Positions 3,917 through 54,223 of a stretch of 64,000 nucleotides of DNA are shown piece by piece (position 1 is the stretch's first letter; the number at the start of each line of letters is the position of its first letter). The notes beneath the pieces were generated by a model that saw only the letters and a list, made by a program, of their open reading frames with translations, was not told the origin of the DNA and did no database searches. The translations under genes were made by a program, and so were the position numbers. The stretch spans positions 124,001 through 188,000 of IMG/VR virus record IMGVR_UViG_3300033233_000001. The stretch is one strand, 5' to 3'.

Positions 3917-4274
3917 ACTTCGTGTCCTGCACGAGGCTCCGACTGAAGAGGAGGAGCGCTTGGGGTCCTTCTTCGAGTGCGCTGGTTGCGATCCGCCGCG
4001 CCGCTGGCCGCTGCGATTCAAGCACTCGCGCGAGAAGCTCTGCGTGAACTGCGGCCGGGACTTGAACCGCGCTCGGAAGGAAGCGCGTCGACAGGACGCG
4101 CCTATGCCGCGAGTGCCGCAGACGCGCGCGATCGATCTCGGCGACGGGCGCGTGGAAGTCATCGACGCTCCGTATGTGGCGTCGCCAGAGGCGAACGCCG
4201 CAGCGGACCGGAAGGTCGCGGCAGCGACGCGCGGTCGAAAGTCGAACAACACAGCCGGGCTCGTCCGGAGATAG
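3900..4274 (+). CDS. Zn-finger protein, paralog of the N-terminus of 2905-3357
   Basis: MARPR..APTEEE..GSFFECAGC..W..F..R..LC aligns with MGRPR..APTAEE..GTFVHCSEC..W..F..R..LC. Confidence 0.65.
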   Translation: MARPRELRVLHEAPTEEEERLGSFFECAGCDPPRRWPLRFKHSREKLCVNCGRDLNRARKEARRQDAPMPRVPQTRAIDLGDGRVEVIDAPYVASPEANAAADRKVAAATRGRKSNNTAGLVRR

Positions 4275-4279
4275 GCACA

Positions 4280-4774
4280 ATGCGCCCGCGAGAGCCAGAC
4301 GACGTATACACGTCACCGAGCGAAGCCGACCGCGCTCGCGCCTCGAAAGTTGCGATGAGGTGCTCCTACTGCAAGTCTCCGCTGCATCGCGCGCCCGACT
4401 GCCAAGCGCTGGCCGACGCCCCGATGATCGGCGGCCACGACATCATCGTCGACGGCAAGGTCTCCTCGAAGGCGCCGGATTTCGTGCGCCTGCGCTTGTT
4501 CGCCGTCTGGCCGCGCGGCGTGGTCATGCGCGCCGACGACAAGAAGGAAGACCTGCGTCCGCTCTCGGAGCCCGCTCCGTTCTGGCGCACGCGTCCGAAG
4601 TCCGAGCTTCTCGTCTGGCGATTGAAGCGGCTCGCCGCTGCCGACTACCCGTACCCCGGCATGCTGCACCTGTTCTTCGGACCGAAGCAGATCACGCTCG
4701 TGGCCGGTGACGACACGCTGGCGCTGGCGCGTGAGATTGCCGTCGCGCTGCGTACGGAAGGATTCGTCCGATGA
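4280..4774 (+). CDS. CCHC zinc-knuckle protein
   Basis: CSYCKSPLHRAPDC fits C-x2-C-x4-H-x4-C. Confidence 0.6.
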   Translation: MRPREPDDVYTSPSEADRARASKVAMRCSYCKSPLHRAPDCQALADAPMIGGHDIIVDGKVSSKAPDFVRLRLFAVWPRGVVMRADDKKEDLRPLSEPAPFWRTRPKSELLVWRLKRLAAADYPYPGMLHLFFGPKQITLVAGDDTLALAREIAVALRTEGFVR

Positions 4775-45724: not shown

Positions 45725-46028
45725 CCCGACGCACCTAACACTTCGATCTCGCATGTGTCGTACCAGCATGAGTCCGAGCGACCTGACCTGCTTGACCCTT
45801 CGATCTCGCCTGTCGAGGGGCGCTGGCGTGACGCGCGTCACGGCCCGACCTGCTTGACCCTTCGATCTCGCCTGTCGAGCAGCTGGCTAACACTGCGTGG
45901 CCATCCGATCAAAGACTACCCGACCTGCTTGACCCTTCGATCTCGCCTGTCGAGGCCTACGGCGACCTCGACGCCGGGGCCCGCGACCGTGTCCCGACCT
46001 GCTTGACCCTTCGATCTCGCCTGTCGAG
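45725..46028 (-). CRISPR. Cas12f-associated array (4 repeats plus a divergent terminal repeat)
   Basis: 36-nt repeat CTCGACAGGCGAGATCGAAGGGTCAAGCAGGTCGGG at 45993, 45919, 45844 and 45782; variant at 45725; spacers of 38, 39, 26 and 21 nt. Confidence 0.92.
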
Positions 46029-46090
46029 AGCCGTCGAAAAACACCAGCGATTCCGCGGGCCTCGTAGCCGGTCTGCGAGCGGTCCCTGTT

Positions 46091-46287
46091 CTCGACATGT
46101 GAGATCGAAGTGCCAAGCACGTTCGAGCGCTTCGTGGCCAACGCATCGAACTGGATTTCCGAACAAGTACCATTACTTGCTACGGTCCACGTACCTTCGC
46201 GAGCGGGTCCGGTACTTTTGCAAGCACCGGGGCCCCTCGCGTTCGTGCCCATCGGGGGGCACATCACCGAACTTGCGTTCGGAGAAA
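46091..46287 (-). ncRNA. tracrRNA, copy 1
   Basis: Inverted repeat copy (anti-repeat) at 46091-46126 plus hairpins; paralogous to 48632-48812. Confidence 0.8.
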
Positions 46288-47805
46288 TCATTCGGCCGCC
46301 TGCGCCTTCTCCGTGCGGGCCTTCTTTCGGATTCGACCGGACGCGCGCTTGATCGCTGCGATCTGATCCGGCAGCGGCAGCGGCTTACCGTCCCGCAGGA
46401 GCATGTTCCACGCGTAGATGACGTCGACGGGACGCTCTAGCCTGCACGTCACGACCTCACAGCAGAACTTGCCGCTCTTGCCGAAGGTCGCGCTGACCTC
46501 GGCCGAGTGCTCGTGCAGGCACGACGGACACGTCCGCGAGTTCATGTCGCTCGGCACGATCTCGACCGTCAGCCCCCGCTTCTTCGCCGCCCACTCGATG
46601 GACTCTCGCAGCTGCGCGAGCGGGAAGCTCCGCACGAGGTACTCGACGTGTTCGCCAAGCTCGGGAGCGCCATCCTTCGCTGGATTGCCCCAGTCTTCGA
46701 CGAGGATCCGCGACACGCCGCGCCTTTCGGCGAGGCGCATCGCGTGCGACGCGATCTCCTGGCACTTCGTGCGTACCCACCTGGCCTCCGCGTCTTCGAG
46801 TCGCGTGAAGTGCTCTTCGCGCCGAGCAGTGCCGTGACCCTTGGCACCGTCACCAAGCTCGCGCTTGTGCCGACCGAGTGACGAGCGCCGCGCACGGTAC
46901 GCCGCCTTGTGGGCGAGCACGTCGCCGCCGTCGGCGAGCACAGTCGTGTACGCTTCACGCCCGTCGTCGCCGCGGGCGATTGCCGCGGTCAGGAACGTCC
47001 GCACGCCTCGATGCAGAGCCATCGTGCGGCCGGTCTCGGTCTTACGGACCTCGGAAGTGAAAGACACGAAGGCCATCCACTTCCGTTTGCCATCGCGATC
47101 GTCGTCTTCGACCAGGCGGCAGTCGCCGAGGCAGGCCGGATCGGCCAGAACACGCTTCAGCGACGCGAAGCCGCTTCCGCCGTAGGGCTTCACGACCAAG
47201 CGCACCTGTGTCGGCCGGTCGCTGTCCTCGCCGAACAACGGCAGCGTCAAGATCGCCAGGCCGTCGCTCGGTTCGAGACGGATCGCGCCGTTGCCTGACG
47301 CGATGTAGATCGGAGAGCCACCCCTGAAGGTGGGAAGCGACATCTTGCCCTTCCATTTTTCCTTCCGCCACTTCTTCCAGCGCGTGAAGGCCGCACCGGC
47401 CGTACCAAGCAGGACTTTCGCGCCGGGGTACGTCGTCGCGACCTTCTCGTCGCCGTAGTACGGCTTGCCCTTCTTGACGCGTGCGGCCGCGGCCTCGCGT
47501 TCGTTGAGCCAGAGGTCACGCGTCAGCTGGTAACTCCGCGACCGCGCTAGGATCTTTCCGGCCTTCTTTGCGCCGAGCTTGCCGGCGCGCTCCTCGACTT
47601 CGAGATCGGTGATCACGCCGTTGAGGACGCGATGGATCGGAGCGCGCAGCGCGCGCAGGAGCGGCCCGAGTGCCGCCCAGTCGTGGTCGAGCGGGCGGAT
47701 CACCTCCAACCGCAGGGTCGAGACGATCTGCGCATCGACCGCCGCATCGTCTAACGCGGCCTCGACGACGAGCGGCCCCGTCTCTTCTTCAGCGGGCTCA
47801 GTCAC
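46288..47805 (-). CDS. cas12f: Cas12f1-like effector, predicted nuclease-dead (about 505 aa)
   Basis: Colinear with AsCas12f1 as recalled (LEVIRPLDHDW, GKMSLPTF, DGGD..GHG, ILVED, CPSC/CCEV Zn ribbon); RuvC-I reads MALHRG in place of MGIDLG. Confidence 0.85.
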   Translation of the reverse strand: MTEPAEEETGPLVVEAALDDAAVDAQIVSTLRLEVIRPLDHDWAALGPLLRALRAPIHRVLNGVITDLEVEERAGKLGAKKAGKILARSRSYQLTRDLWLNEREAAAARVKKGKPYYGDEKVATTYPGAKVLLGTAGAAFTRWKKWRKEKWKGKMSLPTFRGGSPIYIASGNGAIRLEPSDGLAILTLPLFGEDSDRPTQVRLVVKPYGGSGFASLKRVLADPACLGDCRLVEDDDRDGKRKWMAFVSFTSEVRKTETGRTMALHRGVRTFLTAAIARGDDGREAYTTVLADGGDVLAHKAAYRARRSSLGRHKRELGDGAKGHGTARREEHFTRLEDAEARWVRTKCQEIASHAMRLAERRGVSRILVEDWGNPAKDGAPELGEHVEYLVRSFPLAQLRESIEWAAKKRGLTVEIVPSDMNSRTCPSCLHEHSAEVSATFGKSGKFCCEVVTCRLERPVDVIYAWNMLLRDGKPLPLPDQIAAIKRASGRIRKKARTEKAQAAE

Positions 47806-48422
47806 GCTGCATCTCGACGTGACGTGCGCTTCTGTGCCTCGACGGCCGACGGGCTCGTCTCCGAGCCGGCGGCGCGCTTCGGCGTCTTCCGCAGCTGCCT
47901 GATCTCGGCACGCAGCGTGGCGTTCTCGACGCGCAGACGGTCGCACTCTTCCTTGGCCGCGACGAGTTCACTCGCGAGCGCCGTGTAACTCTTGTGACCC
48001 GCGCCCGCTCCGAGAATTCGAGAGCGCAGATCGCTCGCGAGACGACTCACGGTCTGAGCCGAGATCGGCGTCCCGTTCGTACGCTCCCACGTCCGCGCCT
48101 CGTCGAGCATCTCGCGCTGCTTGCCGGCGTCGCGGAAGCGACCGGCGGCCACAACCGCATGAATTCCCACGCCTTCGATGCCCTTCGCGCCCAGACCGTT
48201 ACGCGCTGCCCTGTACCCGTCGTATCGCGACGGGCGGCACAGGTTCGTCTGCTCCAGGAACTGGAGGAACGTGAGGCCCGTGTCCTTCCACAGGCCGGTC
48301 ACCTGTTCCGCCTCGTAGAGATACGAGAGGAAGTCGCCCTCTGCATCGTCCGCCAGCGTTCGGAGACGCTTGGCCTCGGCGATGAACTGTTCGAGCGTCG
48401 TCGACTTGTTGATTCGCGGCAT
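47802..48422 (-). CDS. 206-aa protein translationally coupled to cas12f
   Basis: GTGA overlap with the cas12f start; C-terminal coiled coil. Confidence 0.75.
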   Translation of the reverse strand: MPRINKSTTLEQFIAEAKRLRTLADDAEGDFLSYLYEAEQVTGLWKDTGLTFLQFLEQTNLCRPSRYDGYRAARNGLGAKGIEGVGIHAVVAAGRFRDAGKQREMLDEARTWERTNGTPISAQTVSRLASDLRSRILGAGAGHKSYTALASELVAAKEECDRLRVENATLRAEIRQLRKTPKRAAGSETSPSAVEAQKRTSRRDAA

Positions 48423-48429
48423 GTTCGTA

Positions 48430-48473
48430 GGTCTACACGGCCCAGGACCGTGAGTCAAGAGCTTGCGACACAC
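48430..48473 (-). promoter_or_regulatory. promoter of the partner-cas12f operon
   Basis: Box GTGTGTCGCAAGC, then TTGACT-17-TAGACC-7-ATG. Confidence 0.7.
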
Positions 48474-48506
48474 CTCGTTCCGTGAAGTCGCGAACGCTGG
48501 AACCTA

Positions 48507-48594
48507 CCGGCACGGTCGACCTCTCGATCTGGCGCTGCGAGGTCGCTCTTGCGGCTCGCCCGACGCGCTTGACCATCGATCTCGCCGTCGCGAG
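48507..48594 (-). CRISPR. second degenerate mini-array (2 variant repeats, 17-nt spacer)
   Basis: 48559-48594 resembles the main repeat; 48507-48541 pairs with the anti-repeat at 48632-48666. Confidence 0.7.
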
Positions 48595-48631
48595 TGAGGA
48601 TGGATCGCTCTGGACCGATTACCCCGTCACG

Positions 48632-48812
48632 CTCGCAGCTCCAGATCGAAGGGCCGAACGTGTCCGAGCGCTTCATGGCCAACGCATCGAACTGGATTTC
48701 CTCATGAGCACCAGCGCTCACGAGGTCCACGTACCTTCGCGAGTGCGGCCGAGACCACCTCGCGTTCGGGCCAATCGGGTGGCCCATATCGCCGAGCTTG
48801 CGCTCGGAGAAG
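48632..48812 (-). ncRNA. tracrRNA, copy 2
   Basis: Shares GAGCGCTTC.TGGCCAACGCATCGAACTGGATTTCC, GGTCCACGTACCTTCGCGAG and CTTGCG.TCGGAGAA with copy 1. Confidence 0.8.
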
Positions 48813-49059
48813 TTCTTGTCGGACGTCATCGGCCGTCCCAGCCCTCGCGACGAGCGCGCTCCAACAGGTCGACGCGCTCGGGTCCGACCGCTGCGTGCTG
48901 CCACATCTGGACGTGGGCCTCCTCGACGTCGACGAGACGCACGATCTCGGCGTCCTCGCCGGCAAGCTGGACGAAGCCGGCCTCCGGGCGCCAAATCCAG
49001 ATCGGCCCGCAGAGTACGTTGCCGGACTTTAGCTTGATGGTGGCGTCACGCATTGGGCA

Positions 49060-49131
49060 TTCGGGGGCCAGGACTCGAACCTGGACGGGCGACTTCAAGG
49101 GACGCTGGCCTGCCGATTAGCCGAACCCCGA
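49060..49131 (-). tRNA. tRNA-Gln(TTG), atypical loop
   Basis: Cloverleaf; loop CCTTGAA. Confidence 0.7.
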
Positions 49132-49848: not shown

Positions 49849-49850
49849 TA

Positions 49851-49921
49851 TACCCCGTACGGGAGTCGAACCCGTCTCGTCTGCGTGAAAAACAGATGGC
49901 CTCCCAGAAGCCGAACGGGGC
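49851..49921 (-). tRNA. tRNA-Glu(TTC)
   Basis: Cloverleaf. Confidence 0.8.
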
Positions 49922-49925
49922 AAAA

Positions 49926-50169: not shown

Positions 50170-50209
50170 TGTTGGTTTTGGTGAGACCCTTTCTAGCTGA
50201 TTGAAACTC

Positions 50210-50266
50210 CGAGCAAGGTGGTGTCCGACGGGTTTCAACCAAAGATAACCATCGGACTTCGGCTCG
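50210..50266 (-). ncRNA. Y-RNA-like element
   Basis: GCCGAAG..GGTTATC..CCTTGC immediately after the Ro60 stop. Confidence 0.72.
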
Positions 50267-50274
50267 AAGCAGAA

Positions 50275-51999
50275 CTAGTCGCGGATGAAGTCGGCGATGA
50301 CGGCCGGCGCCGCTGCGTCGAAGCCTACCACGTCGATCATGCCGGCGTCGGTCGGATCTGCGATCGTGAACTCCGACGCGTCGGTCGCGACCACGATGAG
50401 CTTGGACGCGATGCCCATGTTCTCGCGGTACTGCTTGAGCGCCACGTGCGGATGCACGGCGCCGGCCCACGTCTCGTTGTCCGTCGCGACGTAGAACGCC
50501 TCGACCTTCTGCTTCTGCGCGAGCGCGTGGAGCATCGGCAGCGCGCAGTCGGTGCCGCCCATGGGAACGGCCTCCATGGCCTTGATGACGTCGGGCAGCG
50601 TCGTCTTCGCCGTGATGTTGACCGGGAGCAGACGCGAGGGCTGGCCGCCCCAGCGTCCGCCGTAGCCAGCCGCGTGACCGGCCGAGCCGCTCGCGAAGCC
50701 CACGATGTCGTAGTCCGACTCGCGCCGCGCCGTGACCATCGCCATGCAGCCGACGGCCTCGCGTGCCGTGAGCGTCGTGCCCGCGATGAAGCTCGACGCC
50801 ATCGAACCTGACACGTCGAGCGCGAGCATGATGGACTTGCCGGTGGGCTCGACAGTCTCGAACGCCAGGTAGAACGCGTCGTCGAGGGCGTCGATGATGG
50901 ACTGCACCGGCGACCACGTCAGCTTGCCCTTCTCGCCGTGGCCGGCTGCGTACGTCTTGAGCGCGAGGAGCACTGCGATCGGATGCAGCCGCGACTTCTT
51001 GATGGCGTCGGCGTTCTTCAGCTGCTTCACGACGAGCTTCGATGCGTCCGAGCCAGGAACGAGCAGGCCGTTCGCCGTCATGCGCCCGAGGTTGCGCACG
51101 CAAGCGTGCATCGGCATGCGCTGGAGCAGCGCATCCCATACAACCGCGTGCTTCTGGTGCTCTGACGGCACCATCTCGTGAGTGAGCCCGTACTCACGGA
51201 TGATCGTGGCCGCCTCGTTCGCGTCCTTCGCAGCGCGCACCTTCTCGACGCCCTCGATCAGCGCCGGCAGGGCTCCGGCGGCGACCGCCTCGTACGAGAC
51301 GCCCGCCTCCTGCTGCTTGCGCTTGACGGAGCGCTCCCCGAGGCCGTCGCGTCCCGCGATGGTCCAGCGCAGGATGGACGAGACGATCGGATCCGTCGTC
51401 TTCGGGTGCGCCTGCCGAAGCAGGTCGCGGTGCGAGCGTCCGCCGCGCTGCTGGTACTTCAGCAGCTGGTAGGCGAGGTCTCGCCCCTCCTTGCTCGTGT
51501 ACCACGCGCCGACCGCGCGGCGCAGGCCCGAGCCCCAGCCGCGAAGCTGCTCGACCTGAGCGACGAACTCGAAGAGGTGCGTGCCGGTCCGGCACACGCG
51601 TGGCAGCGCGGCAAGCGCGAGGCGCCGCACAACCGCGTCCTCGTGGGCAGCGGCGACGGCGAGCGCGAAGATCGCCGCATCGTTCTTCGGCGCGCGACCC
51701 GACTCGCTGAGCGCAGCGATGTGCTCGACAGCGGCCGCAGCGTCGTCCTTGAGGCAGCGGCCGAGCGCGGTCGCGTTCTCCTTGACGAGCTTCTTCTCGC
51801 CGACGTGGAACGTCCCGCCCTCGGCGCCGAGGATCAGAAAACGGTCCAGCCGCTTCCAGTCGTCCACTTCAAACGTGAAGCCACCGGCCGCGTTCTTGAC
51901 CTGACGCACGTCGGCCTTCGCCGACTGCGGCGCGTCCTCGCGCGCAGCGGACACGGACTTCTTCTTCGACGCACCGAGGTGCGCGGCGTAGTTGGACAT
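50275..51999 (-). CDS. rsr: Ro60/Rsr TROVE-vWA RNA-binding protein
   Basis: NAAGGF..RFLILG, KYQQRGG..HRD, DVSGSM, GGTDCALPM, TDNETW and GFD. Confidence 0.95.
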   Translation of the reverse strand: MSNYAAHLGASKKKSVSAAREDAPQSAKADVRQVKNAAGGFTFEVDDWKRLDRFLILGAEGGTFHVGEKKLVKENATALGRCLKDDAAAAVEHIAALSESGRAPKNDAAIFALAVAAAHEDAVVRRLALAALPRVCRTGTHLFEFVAQVEQLRGWGSGLRRAVGAWYTSKEGRDLAYQLLKYQQRGGRSHRDLLRQAHPKTTDPIVSSILRWTIAGRDGLGERSVKRKQQEAGVSYEAVAAGALPALIEGVEKVRAAKDANEAATIIREYGLTHEMVPSEHQKHAVVWDALLQRMPMHACVRNLGRMTANGLLVPGSDASKLVVKQLKNADAIKKSRLHPIAVLLALKTYAAGHGEKGKLTWSPVQSIIDALDDAFYLAFETVEPTGKSIMLALDVSGSMASSFIAGTTLTAREAVGCMAMVTARRESDYDIVGFASGSAGHAAGYGGRWGGQPSRLLPVNITAKTTLPDVIKAMEAVPMGGTDCALPMLHALAQKQKVEAFYVATDNETWAGAVHPHVALKQYRENMGIASKLIVVATDASEFTIADPTDAGMIDVVGFDAAAPAVIADFIRD

Positions 52000-52037
52000 G
52001 ACGAATCTCCCAGAGACAAGAGCCCAGAGAATCAGAG

Positions 52038-52112
52038 CGTCCCATGGGGGACTCGAACCCCCGTTGCCGACGTGAGAGGCCGGCGTCCTTTGGCCATCTA
52101 GACGAATGGGAC
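52038..52112 (-). tRNA. tRNA-Glu(CTC)
   Basis: Cloverleaf. Confidence 0.88.
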
Positions 52113-52409
52113 AGGGAACTGTACAGGAACCGAAGACGAGATCAGGCCGCGACTTCTTCACCCGCGCGCGCCGGGGGCTTCGCTTCGACCTTCGGCGCGC
52201 ACTCCTTGCACACGAGCTTTTCCTTGGCGACCTCGTGTCCGAACCGCGTGTTCATCGGCCGGTCGAGGTGGTCGCGCTCGTACATGGCCACGCGGTACGA
52301 CGAGACGACGCGGACTGGGCGCGGGTCGAGCACGGTGCCGTTACGCATCGAGCCGTCGAACGCGATCCGGCAGACCTCACAGCGATAGCTCATCGGAATC
52401 ACCTTTTTC

Positions 52410-52492
52410 TGGAGAGCGGAGGACTCGAACCCCACAGCCGAAGCTGCTAACCGGTCTTCAAAGCCGGGCCGCGCCTTGCGACTTCGCCCTCC
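52410..52492 (-). tRNA. tRNA-Ser(TGA)
   Basis: Long variable arm. Confidence 0.72.
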
Positions 52493-52932: not shown

Positions 52933-54223
52933 AAAATGTGATCGAACGTGTTCGTTCGGTCACGACTTGGCTCCTGCTTCCGCCACGACACTTGCTCGAC
53001 GCTGAGGCCGTCGAGTAGAGGCAGCCGTGTCCACAGGCGTAGCCTTGCGGCTGTTCCCCGAAAGCCTCGGGTACGCTTCCAAATTCAACGCGGCGTTGCG
53101 GTCTCGGTCCAGGACCAGACCGCATGCCTCGCACTCGTACGTCCTCGTGCCCAGCGACAACTCGGCCTTCACGACTCCGCAGCCGCTGCACGTCTTACTC
53201 GACGGGAACCACCGGTCAGCCACGATCACCTCGCAGCCGTAGACAGGTCCCTTCTGTATCAGCAGCGTCCTGAACATCCCCATCCCGACATCCGAGAGCG
53301 CACGCGCCAGCGAATGGTTTCTGAGCATCCCTGCCACGTTCATGCCCTCGATGACCGCCGCTTGGGTTTCACGCGCGATCTTCGTGGTCGTCTTGTGCAG
53401 GAAATCCTTCCGGATGTTCGCGACGTCTCGGTGAATCTTCGCCAGTTCCTCACGAGCCTTACGCCTGTTCGCGCTTCCCTCCTGTCTACGATGGAGCTTC
53501 CTGTTCGCACGCCGCAGCTTCTTCAACGCCTTCCGAAGCGGCTTCGGCGCGTCTAGGGGCTCTCCTCGTGACGGCACGACCGCAGTCTTGAGGCCCAGGT
53601 CGATGCCGAGGATCTCGTGCTCCGGGACGTTCGGCACCCGGAAGTCGCCCTCGACCTGAACCGACAGATACCAACGGTCGGCGATGCGCTTCACGCGACC
53701 GCCGAGGATCTTGCCGTGCAGCCTGAGCGGCTCGCGCGTCTTCACGCTGCCGATGACCGGGAGGTGAACGTGCTTGCCATCGGCAAGGAAATGGAATTTG
53801 TCGTTCGCGACGTAGAAGGCGTCACGGGTCTTGCCCTTCTTCTTGAAGTTCGGTGGTCCGACGCGTGGGCCCTGGCGCTTTCCCGTGATGCTCTTGATGT
53901 AGTTCGAGAACGCCGTGTCCAGGTCGGAGAACGCGCCGGCATTCGCGTCTCGCGGCGACTCGAAGATCCAGGGGAACGCTTCGCCCTTGATGGCGTTGAA
54001 CTGCTTCTTGAGCTTGGTCCCGCTGGGCTTCTGGCCGGCCCTGTACTGGCGGTTCCACTCGTGAAGTGCCCAGTTGTACGTGAAGCGCGCGACACCGCAT
54101 GCACGCAGCATCGCCTGGCGCTGCCGTACTGTCGGGTCGAGAGCTATGACGTGTCCGTGGATCATGTGATCGTGCGTCTGTAGTTTGTCCGTAAATGTCC
54201 GCGAAGACAAGAGCTAGCTATGG
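52924..54223 (-). mobile_element. non-autonomous IS607-like TnpB element
   Basis: Removing it rejoins GGAG|GGTGAACC, the tRNA 5' end; CGATCACAT occurs near both ends; no tnpA. Confidence 0.65.
52960..54165 (-). CDS. tnpB: TnpB RNA-guided endonuclease (intact D-E-D)
   Basis: N-terminal HTH, GIDLGLK, IEGM, CSGC/CEAC and DRDRNAALNL. Confidence 0.93.
   Translation of the reverse strand: MIHGHVIALDPTVRQRQAMLRACGVARFTYNWALHEWNRQYRAGQKPSGTKLKKQFNAIKGEAFPWIFESPRDANAGAFSDLDTAFSNYIKSITGKRQGPRVGPPNFKKKGKTRDAFYVANDKFHFLADGKHVHLPVIGSVKTREPLRLHGKILGGRVKRIADRWYLSVQVEGDFRVPNVPEHEILGIDLGLKTAVVPSRGEPLDAPKPLRKALKKLRRANRKLHRRQEGSANRRKAREELAKIHRDVANIRKDFLHKTTTKIARETQAAVIEGMNVAGMLRNHSLARALSDVGMGMFRTLLIQKGPVYGCEVIVADRWFPSSKTCSGCGVVKAELSLGTRTYECEACGLVLDRDRNAALNLEAYPRLSGNSRKATPVDTAASTRRPQRRASVVAEAGAKS

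Follow-up and report, generated by a model that had tools for sequence, protein, structure and literature searches.

What is the role of a small protein whose gene is joined, by overlapping stop and start codons, to the gene of a Cas12f-like protein with a replaced catalytic residue? This question is raised by a locus in a stretch of 64,000 nucleotides, here called the window, which comprises bases 124001-188000 of the 297,749-bp IMG/VR virus record IMGVR_UViG_3300033233_000001. The record comes from a sediment metagenome, is estimated to be 90% complete and has a G+C content of ~65%; since it is a virus of 297,749 bp, the element hosting the locus is a large ("jumbo") phage. An earlier note, made from the letters of the window, had proposed that the product of the upstream gene (hereafter the partner, P0001) gives the dead Cas12f its function. 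We consider, with a probability of roughly 45%, that the partner serves as an accessory subunit dedicated to a type V CRISPR system which is derived from Cas12f, is carried by phages and cannot cleave. This reading is based on the exclusive linkage of the two genes, the overlap of their stop and start codons, the absence of an enzymatic domain from the partner, its DNA-binding-like fold, its leucine zipper, and the apparently disabled nuclease of the Cas12f-like protein (P0002). The two genes are as follows.

47802-48422, minus strand: partner gene, 206 aa (P0001); supported by its translation, AlphaFold2 (AF2) models and a family of 413 clusters
46288-47805, minus strand: Cas12f-like gene, 505 aa (P0002), GTG start; supported by NCBIfam, Pfam and a structure alignment with AsCas12f

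Linkage of the partner gene to the Cas12f-like gene

The minus-strand open reading frame (ORF) running from 48422 to 47802 gives a 206-residue translation that contains the zipper peptide quoted in the earlier note, LVAAKEECDRLRVENATLRAEIRQLR. Its TGA stop codon (47804-47802) overlaps the GTG start codon (47805-47803) of the Cas12f-like gene, forming the sequence GTGA at 47805-47802. That this overlap, which the earlier note had already pointed out, is real follows from the fact that no other start codon is available in frame between the GTG and the point where the conserved N-terminal sequence of the Cas protein (IVSTLRLEV...) begins, or further upstream. A word-indexed search gave four relatives of the partner, and an exhaustive profile search gave 413 clusters at E<=1e-3, 188 of them at E<=1e-10. 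The conservation of the ORF in the 413 clusters confirms that it is a real gene.

Gene contexts were taken over a range of divergence levels, down to 22% identity. They cover the window and the loci L002/L003/L004, L005-L007/L009, L008, L010, L011, L012, L018, L019, L020, L022, L023, L024, L025/L026 and L028/L029; L027, a contig of 997 bp that is uninformative on neighbours, was left out of the count. The partner adjoined a Cas12f-like gene in all 12 informative divergent lineages. For the four close homologues a 4-nt overlap with a Cas12f-like gene of 497-505 aa was found in every case. The homologues P0009, P0010 and P0014 also overlap their downstream genes, which are truncated and Cas12f-like according to BLAST, and for P0036 and P0055 a Cas12f-like gene is the next one downstream. 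A search with the Cas protein led to three further loci in which the partner lies upstream and the junction is an ATGA or GTGA overlap. A 4-nt stop/start overlap, mostly of one of these two forms, is present in most lineages. Locus L022 corresponds to the GenBank entry Virus Rctr197k (KX853510), in which the partner ("hypothetical protein"), the Cas protein ("transposase-like protein") and an annotated CRISPR stand in a row.

The order of the genes is inverted (cas, partner, array) in L025/L026 (P0080) and in L028/L029 (P0152), where the junction consists of either a 4-nt overlap or a 186-nt spacer holding a tracr-like sequence. The genes flanking the pair differ in L022, L024, L025 and L028. 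Moreover, the identities of partner and Cas proteins co-vary over 12 pairs that range from 22% to 81% identity (r=0.85, Mantel p~5e-4), a correlation that mainly shows co-inheritance because related sequences share ancestry. The earlier note had stated that its proposal would fail if homologues of the partner occurred independently of cas12f and no interaction were detected; on the first of these points, the neighbourhood sampling found the pair together in each informative lineage. Taken together, the conserved gene contexts provide strong evidence that the partner and the Cas12f-like protein function jointly; they are not evidence of physical contact between them. Hence, of the proposal that the partner gives the dead Cas12f its function, the dedicated partnership is supported by the adjacency and the co-divergence, and a physical interaction is conjectural, as are the activities suggested in the earlier note (co-repressor, DNA-bridging or loading factor).

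The Cas12f-like protein and its guide RNAs

The Cas12f-like protein matches the NCBIfam models of Cas12f2 (3.4e-10) and TnpB (3.1e-9) and the Pfam TNB domain PF07282 (1.1e-5), and could be aligned residue by residue with solved AsCas12f structures (E~4e-15). In this alignment its MALHRGV sequence corresponds to MGIDLGV of the wild-type AsCas12f chain, which places a His at the position of the RuvC-I Asp. The aligned position is that of the catalytic Asp because the deposited chains 8dzj and 7wju have Ala exactly there. The Glu of RuvC-II (LVEDW) and the Asp of RuvC-III (RPVDVIYAWNM) are retained, so that P0002 lacks the intact RuvC Asp-Glu-Asp triad of type V-F. The RuvC-I residue is His or Arg in every Cas homologue examined, down to 22% identity; it is Arg in L020 and L025, and the L020 protein is also without the RuvC-III Asp. 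Because the RuvC-I Asp is replaced by His or Arg across the homologues, loss of cleavage is likely. The term "dead", used for this protein in the earlier note, is thereby supported, not proven. The phage genome contains a single Cas12f-like gene of this kind. The genes called in the fetched loci gave no Pfam match to Cas1, Cas2 or Cas4; this search did not extend to the complete phage genome.

The following guide RNA genes, comprising trans-activating CRISPR RNA (tracrRNA) and tracrRNA-like genes, and arrays were identified.

46064-46290, minus strand: tracrRNA 1, starting at the cas stop codon; inverted repeats I1-I4, nhmmer E=5e-56
45725-46028, minus strand: CRISPR array 1, five 36-nt repeats (the last one degenerate) with spacers of 38, 39, 26 and 21 nt
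48618-48814, minus strand: tracrRNA-like gene 2, ~73% identical to tracrRNA 1; repeat families D2, D8 and D9, inverted repeat I5, blastn, nhmmer E=3e-43
48506-48592, minus strand: mini-array 2, with two degenerate units resembling the repeat (48592-48557, 48541-48506), which pair with the anti-repeat of tracrRNA-like gene 2
71533-71718 of the phage genome (G000:C1), minus strand: tracrRNA-like gene 3, ~52 kb before the window start; nhmmer E=5e-23, with the copy given by the sequence profile at 71569-71718

As in type V-F, a CRISPR array and a tracrRNA with an anti-repeat lie next to the effector gene. The anti-repeat of tracrRNA 1, which pairs with the CRISPR repeat, is located in its 3' part (46122-46091), and the RNA of ~225 nt is predicted to be structured (fold z-score -5.4). 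An alignment of the tracrRNA over 11 loci revealed conserved segments that match the stems predicted for tracrRNA 1; covariation was not counted. No matching Rfam family was found for it. The second gene, located upstream of the partner promoter, carries its own anti-repeat, and the inverted repeat formed between it and mini-array 2 (I5) is 31 nt long and 84% complementary. In the third gene a closed hairpin (CGTCAGA-TCGG-TCTGACG) takes the place of the repeat:anti-repeat duplex and is followed by a candidate fixed guide, and this RNA looks like a natural single-guide RNA. It converges on a GroES-like gene that was identified by eye.

A profile search found three tracr-like copies in the phage vs one Cas gene, and related phages carry two or three. 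Arrays are also present in L002, L008, L018, L019, L020, L022, L025 and L028. Most of the arrays outside the window have 3-7 repeats, and in several the repeats are in decay; L005 lacks an array, and that of L028 (L028:5722-7152) comprises 22 repeats. Spacing is irregular, with spacers of 21-39 nt in the window array and a repeat spacing of 37-85 nt in the L028 array. Judged from the sequences of its guide genes, this one genome displays stages of decay from an array to fixed single guides, namely a full array, a mini-array with its tracrRNA, and a fused RNA resembling a single guide.

Related phages bear on the origin of the additional copies. Two tandem partner paralogues, 42% identical to each other, precede one cas12f-like gene in L005-L007 and L009 (L005:951-2411, L009:5704-7163). 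The upstream paralogue is directly followed by a tracr-like fragment, as if the cas gene had been deleted from a duplicated module. The position in the window that matches the second paralogue holds tracrRNA-like gene 2 and the mini-array. That related phages have a second paralogue there suggests that the whole module was duplicated in tandem long ago and that part of it was later lost. Locus L005 also carries a tandem of two tracr-like units behind cas, at 3926-4114 and 4220-4350.

Family and fold of the partner protein

In the partner, a helical N-domain (residues ~1-141) is connected by a short basic linker to a leucine zipper (~146-179), after which comes a disordered tail that is also basic. 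AF2 modelled the full-length protein with a predicted local distance difference test (pLDDT) score of 82, and the N-domain, based on 73 sequences, with a pLDDT of 97.3 and a predicted template modelling score (pTM) of 0.89. Within the zipper, L163/L170/L177 and E159/E166/E173 are invariant among close homologues at a spacing of seven residues, and N167, three residues before L170, provides an Asn at the zipper 'a' position. In GCN4-type zippers an Asn at 'a' favours parallel dimers. The AF2 models and the heptad Leu/Glu pattern agree with the helical core and C-terminal coiled coil described in the earlier note.

Relatives of the partner are almost all ~170-230 aa long and match over their full length, with no second domain. 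The N-domain of the family comprises ~140 residues with conserved A17, L20, R21, L35, E39 and W45, and shares a GVGxxAVxAAG segment and a WExTNGTxIS-QSA segment. Next come a linker rich in Arg, a zipper with heptad Leu and Glu and with Asn at 'a', and a tail rich in Lys and Arg. A pattern scan of 185,579 prokaryote species genomes yielded no relatives of the partner, and the Cas12f-like protein was not found in representative prokaryote genomes at scan sensitivity. At that sensitivity a plasmid search likewise gave no match to either protein, and no usable relatives came out of IMG/VR when it was scanned with P0064, P0157, the Cas alignment or the alignment of close partner sequences.

The partner belongs to no Pfam, NCBIfam or PHROG family; coiled-coil models touch its C-terminal helix with sub-threshold scores. 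These family-model searches are in agreement with the earlier statement that no Cas, sigma-factor or transposase motif can be recognised. Three specific identities were rejected. The bZIP_1, bZIP_2 and HALZ matches are restricted to the zipper and lie below the cut-offs. A sigma factor was dropped because no Sigma70_r2/r4 match was obtained for P0001 or among the 25 families listed for 73 members. The gene usually found upstream of tnpB in IS605/IS607 elements is tnpA; a TnpA-like transposase at this position was discarded because Pfam and NCBIfam gave no Y1 or serine recombinase domain and the fold is all-helical.

Structural comparisons point to a general class of fold. For neither model, full-length or N-domain, did the PDB (Foldseek and VIA-align) or BFVD contain a match that rose above the noise to be expected with helical proteins, and a profile search of PDB sequences gave no match. 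The best extended PDB match of the N-domain, the DNA-binding domain of ParB on parS (Z 5.8, 102 residues), is within helical-fold noise, and so are the matches to sigma-factor domains (Z 4.3-4.8). Against a library of predicted structures the N-domain matched DUF222 with or without HNH (template modelling (TM) scores of 0.64 and 0.62), HTH_ParB (TM 0.54) and DUF1016_N (TM 0.52). The match in AFDB was DUF222 (probability 0.99), the best fold match in Swiss-Prot was NovE, an LmbU-type regulator (0.94), and a language-model feature search gave DUF3102 (score 0.92, few shared features). The corresponding sequence models did not detect the partner: DUF222 (PF02720) found nothing in the phage genome at E<=0.01 and is not among the Pfam matches of P0001, DUF3102 (PF11300) had no match in the phage genome at E<=1, and HTH_ParB (PF17762) matched another phage gene, ParB_N not being found in P0001 either. 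The helical domains DUF222 and DUF1016_N are found in fusions with nucleases, and HTH_ParB is part of a DNA-binding protein. According to these models, the partner represents a new family outside all named ones, with a fold like that of DNA-binding or nuclease-fused helical domains joined to a dimerising zipper.

Possible roles of the partner and related systems

As an accessory subunit, the partner would form a parallel dimer via its zipper, would bind nucleic acid through two helical domains and basic tails, and would join the Cas12f-like protein loaded with guide RNA. Cas12f1 enzymes work as dimers on one guide. The resulting binding-only complex would hold, block or bridge target DNA picked by CRISPR RNAs (crRNAs) or fixed guides, and the outcome would be silencing of the target instead of cutting. 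The targets are probably genes of the host or of rival mobile elements, because no target was found in the phage's own genome. We regard as doubtful a more specific scheme, in which the dead Cas12f finds its site via CRISPR or fixed guides and there nucleates a zipper-dimerised protein like ParB-HTH or DUF222 that clamps, bridges or coats the DNA, by which the phage would silence host or rival genes. If true, clamping, bridging or coating would be an effector principle that has not been described for any CRISPR type.

Several observations weigh against an accessory subunit acting on DNA. The four spacers of the array, the mini-array and the third guide have no protospacer in the phage's own 298-kb genome, and the first 22 nt of spacers 1 and 2 have no exact match in IMG/VR. 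A His at RuvC-I by itself does not prove full loss of nuclease activity, as the Glu and the second Asp are mostly kept. DNA binding by the partner is inferred, because the fold matches are to predicted models of domains of unknown function and the PDB matches lie within noise. The contexts sampled comprise 12 lineages, set against 413 clusters in the family. Prediction of a complex between the Cas12f-like protein and the partner scored 0.16 vs a mark of 0.32, a result that is evidence neither way. Finally, in three samples (L014:793-1673, L015 and L017:3121-4001) a deletion has joined the 5' half of a TROVE gene to the final 64 partner codons; the variant retains zipper and tail, the ATGA junction and an intact cas12f, and has lost the N-domain. 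The N-domain is therefore dispensable for persistence of that phage population.

The main rival is that the partner is a transcription regulator of the locus, like Aca of anti-CRISPR operons and other cas regulators, that binds its own promoter or that of the array or tracrRNA, controls in this way how strongly cas12f and the guide RNAs are expressed, and stays outside the effector complex. Repressors usually combine dimerisation with a domain that binds DNA, the fold resembles DNA-binding helix-turn-helix (HTH) domains and includes the NovE match, the partner gene lies directly before the array in L025 and L028, and the deletion variant shows cas12f persisting without the N-domain of the partner. 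The region upstream of the partner gene also has features that a regulator might use.

48430-48473, minus strand: promoter-like element, GTGTGTCGCAAGC at 48473-48461, TTGACT at 48458-48453, a 17-nt spacer and TAGACC at 48435-48430

The spacer of this element holds a 17-bp near-palindrome, CACGGTCCTGGGCCGTG, which is compatible with an operator. The near-palindrome is, however, not conserved in related phages. A partner-specific operator made of the GTGTGTCG motifs was ruled out as well, since these are a promoter feature found throughout the phage genome. The 298-kb genome has 20 copies of the motif GTGTGTCGNAAGC, which often stand ahead of CTTGAC and a TGTC(C/G)GACA palindrome, with window positions 48473, 45670, 20600 and 17110 on the minus strand and 15053, 31571 and 33863 on the plus strand. 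The same motif lies upstream of partner genes in related phages and is shared with L002, L005 and L008; it is likely to define a promoter class of this phage. Furthermore, the position of the partner gene relative to the promoter is not conserved, and the exclusive linkage to one effector family (22-62% identity), the mostly overlapping stop/start codons and the co-divergence exceed what is the norm for a generic regulator. We therefore judge a regulator of the locus unlikely.

The same region bears on how the partner is translated. The -10-like hexamer ends 7 nt before the ATG of the partner and there is no Shine-Dalgarno sequence; sequences of the form TTGAC-N18-TAGA occur three times in the window vs 0.13 expected, always on the coding strand. 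Because this promoter-like element is enriched in the window and lies 7 nt from an ATG without Shine-Dalgarno sequence, a leaderless transcript from a phage-standard promoter is plausible. The leaderless start asserted in the earlier note is not proven by this.

Another explanation, rather improbable in our view, is that the partner is an adaptor that links the DNA-bound dead Cas12f to RNA polymerase, a part of the replisome or a nuclease, and so activates or recruits, much as the sigma factor does in dCas12f-sigmaE. There is precedent for nuclease-dead Cas12f homologues that work through an adjacent partner (PMC13472631; PMC10691335), the partner has no enzymatic domain of its own, and its structure weakly echoes sigma-factor domains. 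Those structural matches are nevertheless within noise, no Sigma70 match appeared for P0001 or among the 25 families listed for 73 members, and the neighbourhood holds no candidate for a recruited partner that is conserved across lineages.

It is distinctly improbable that the partner acts on the RNA side, as a chaperone, stabiliser or processing helper for guide RNAs, or as a non-canonical factor of spacer uptake (cas1 and cas2 were not seen in the fetched loci). The excess of tracr-like genes over the single Cas gene, the irregular spacers, the basic linker and tail of the partner, and the tandem paralogues beside tracr-like fragments in L005/L009 are what such a role might produce. In contrast, no RNA-binding or nuclease fold was recognised in the partner, and small arrays with decaying repeats argue against active adaptation. 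That the adjacency is inherited synteny without joint function, the partner being an unrelated phage protein, is very improbable: the closest homologues do come from related phages sharing RF-1, TROVE and vWA neighbours, but the adjacency survives changed flanks, changed gene order and a divergence to 22% identity.

The surroundings of the module contain further genes. The gene at 50275-52161 (minus strand) has homologues in related phages that carry the Pfam domains TROVE (Ro60) and vWA_Ro60, and this TROVE gene and an RF-1-like release-factor gene are syntenic in the related phages L002, L003 and L009. Directly after it, at 50206-50271 (minus strand), lies an Rfam match (39.3 bits, cut-off 38) to RF01656, a nematode small RNA family related to Y RNAs. 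The match and the TROVE gene may constitute a phage-borne pair similar to Ro60 and Y RNA. Genes for tRNA-Gln and tRNA-Glu (49060-49131 and 49850-49922, minus strand) lie among small ORFs between the TROVE gene and the CRISPR module. A 416-aa TnpB/IS605 OrfB-like ORF with a canonical GIDLG RuvC-I (52960-54210, minus strand), unrelated to the Cas12f-like clade, adjoins genes for tRNA-Ser (52410-52492) and tRNA-Glu (52037-52112).

How does a system with a dedicated accessory subunit compare with those already described? Type V-F Cas12f (AsCas12f, Un1Cas12f1) shares with it a homologous effector with the TNB zinc-finger domain, a tracrRNA that is ~200 nt long, and repeats of 36 nt. It differs in that RuvC-I is His or Arg here, that an extra gene is obligatory, and that the adaptation genes cas1, cas2 and cas4, present in part of V-F, were not seen in the loci. 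The N-domain of the partner is similar in overall fold to DUF222, HTH_ParB and DUF1016_N (TM 0.52-0.64) and, by the feature score, to DUF3102; unlike DUF222, DUF1016_N and ParB proteins, the partner has no HNH, PD-(D/E)xK nuclease or ParB CTPase, and has a leucine zipper instead. DNA binding without cleavage, the likely mode here, is known for type V-M Cas12m (PMC11013384) and TldR (10.1101/2023.11.30.569447), which act without a dedicated protein partner and are not close sequence relatives.

The closest functional analogue, by comparison of the two loci, is dCas12f-sigmaE (PMC13472631; 10.1101/2025.06.10.658880), in which a RuvC-disabled Cas12f relative, as P0002 with its replaced catalytic Asp probably is, also stands beside a small helical partner and uses guides derived from tracrRNA and repeat. 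The decay of arrays towards fixed single guides is a further likeness to the phage of the window; the passages on the dCas12f-sigmaE lineage in PMC10691335 describe decay from an array to a fused guide RNA. The present system differs in that its partner is no sigma factor by sequence, that it resides in a large phage and not in a Bacteroidota chromosome, and that CRISPR arrays and a separate tracrRNA remain.

The description of subtype V-U24 by Altae-Tran, Shmakov, Makarova et al. (2023, PNAS, PMC10691335) mentions a noncanonical RuvC-I and an HTH protein of unknown function, and the His or Arg at RuvC-I and the ParB-HTH-like fold of the partner fit that description. Judged by that description, V-U24 probably catalogues the present system or a close one. 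The passages on V-U24 in that source say nothing on function or structure, nor on a phage origin, a zipper, copies of the tracrRNA or overlapping genes. A literature search found no other paper that mentions V-U24, and full-text searches found no description of the partner. The locus thus probably represents an exapted Cas12f with a mutated nuclease site and a dedicated partner, catalogued once without study.

Nuclease-dead relatives of Cas12f and TnpB were recently found to work as natural RNA-guided transcription factors, in one case via an adjacent sigma factor. The locus described here adds a second, unrelated partner family, which occurs in large environmental phages and appears to exist solely beside such proteins. 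If the partner is the functional half of the system, it would define an accessory module of a new kind for programmable DNA binding in a compact format (~500 aa plus ~200 aa) and would offer a handle on the role of phage-borne CRISPR systems that do not cleave.

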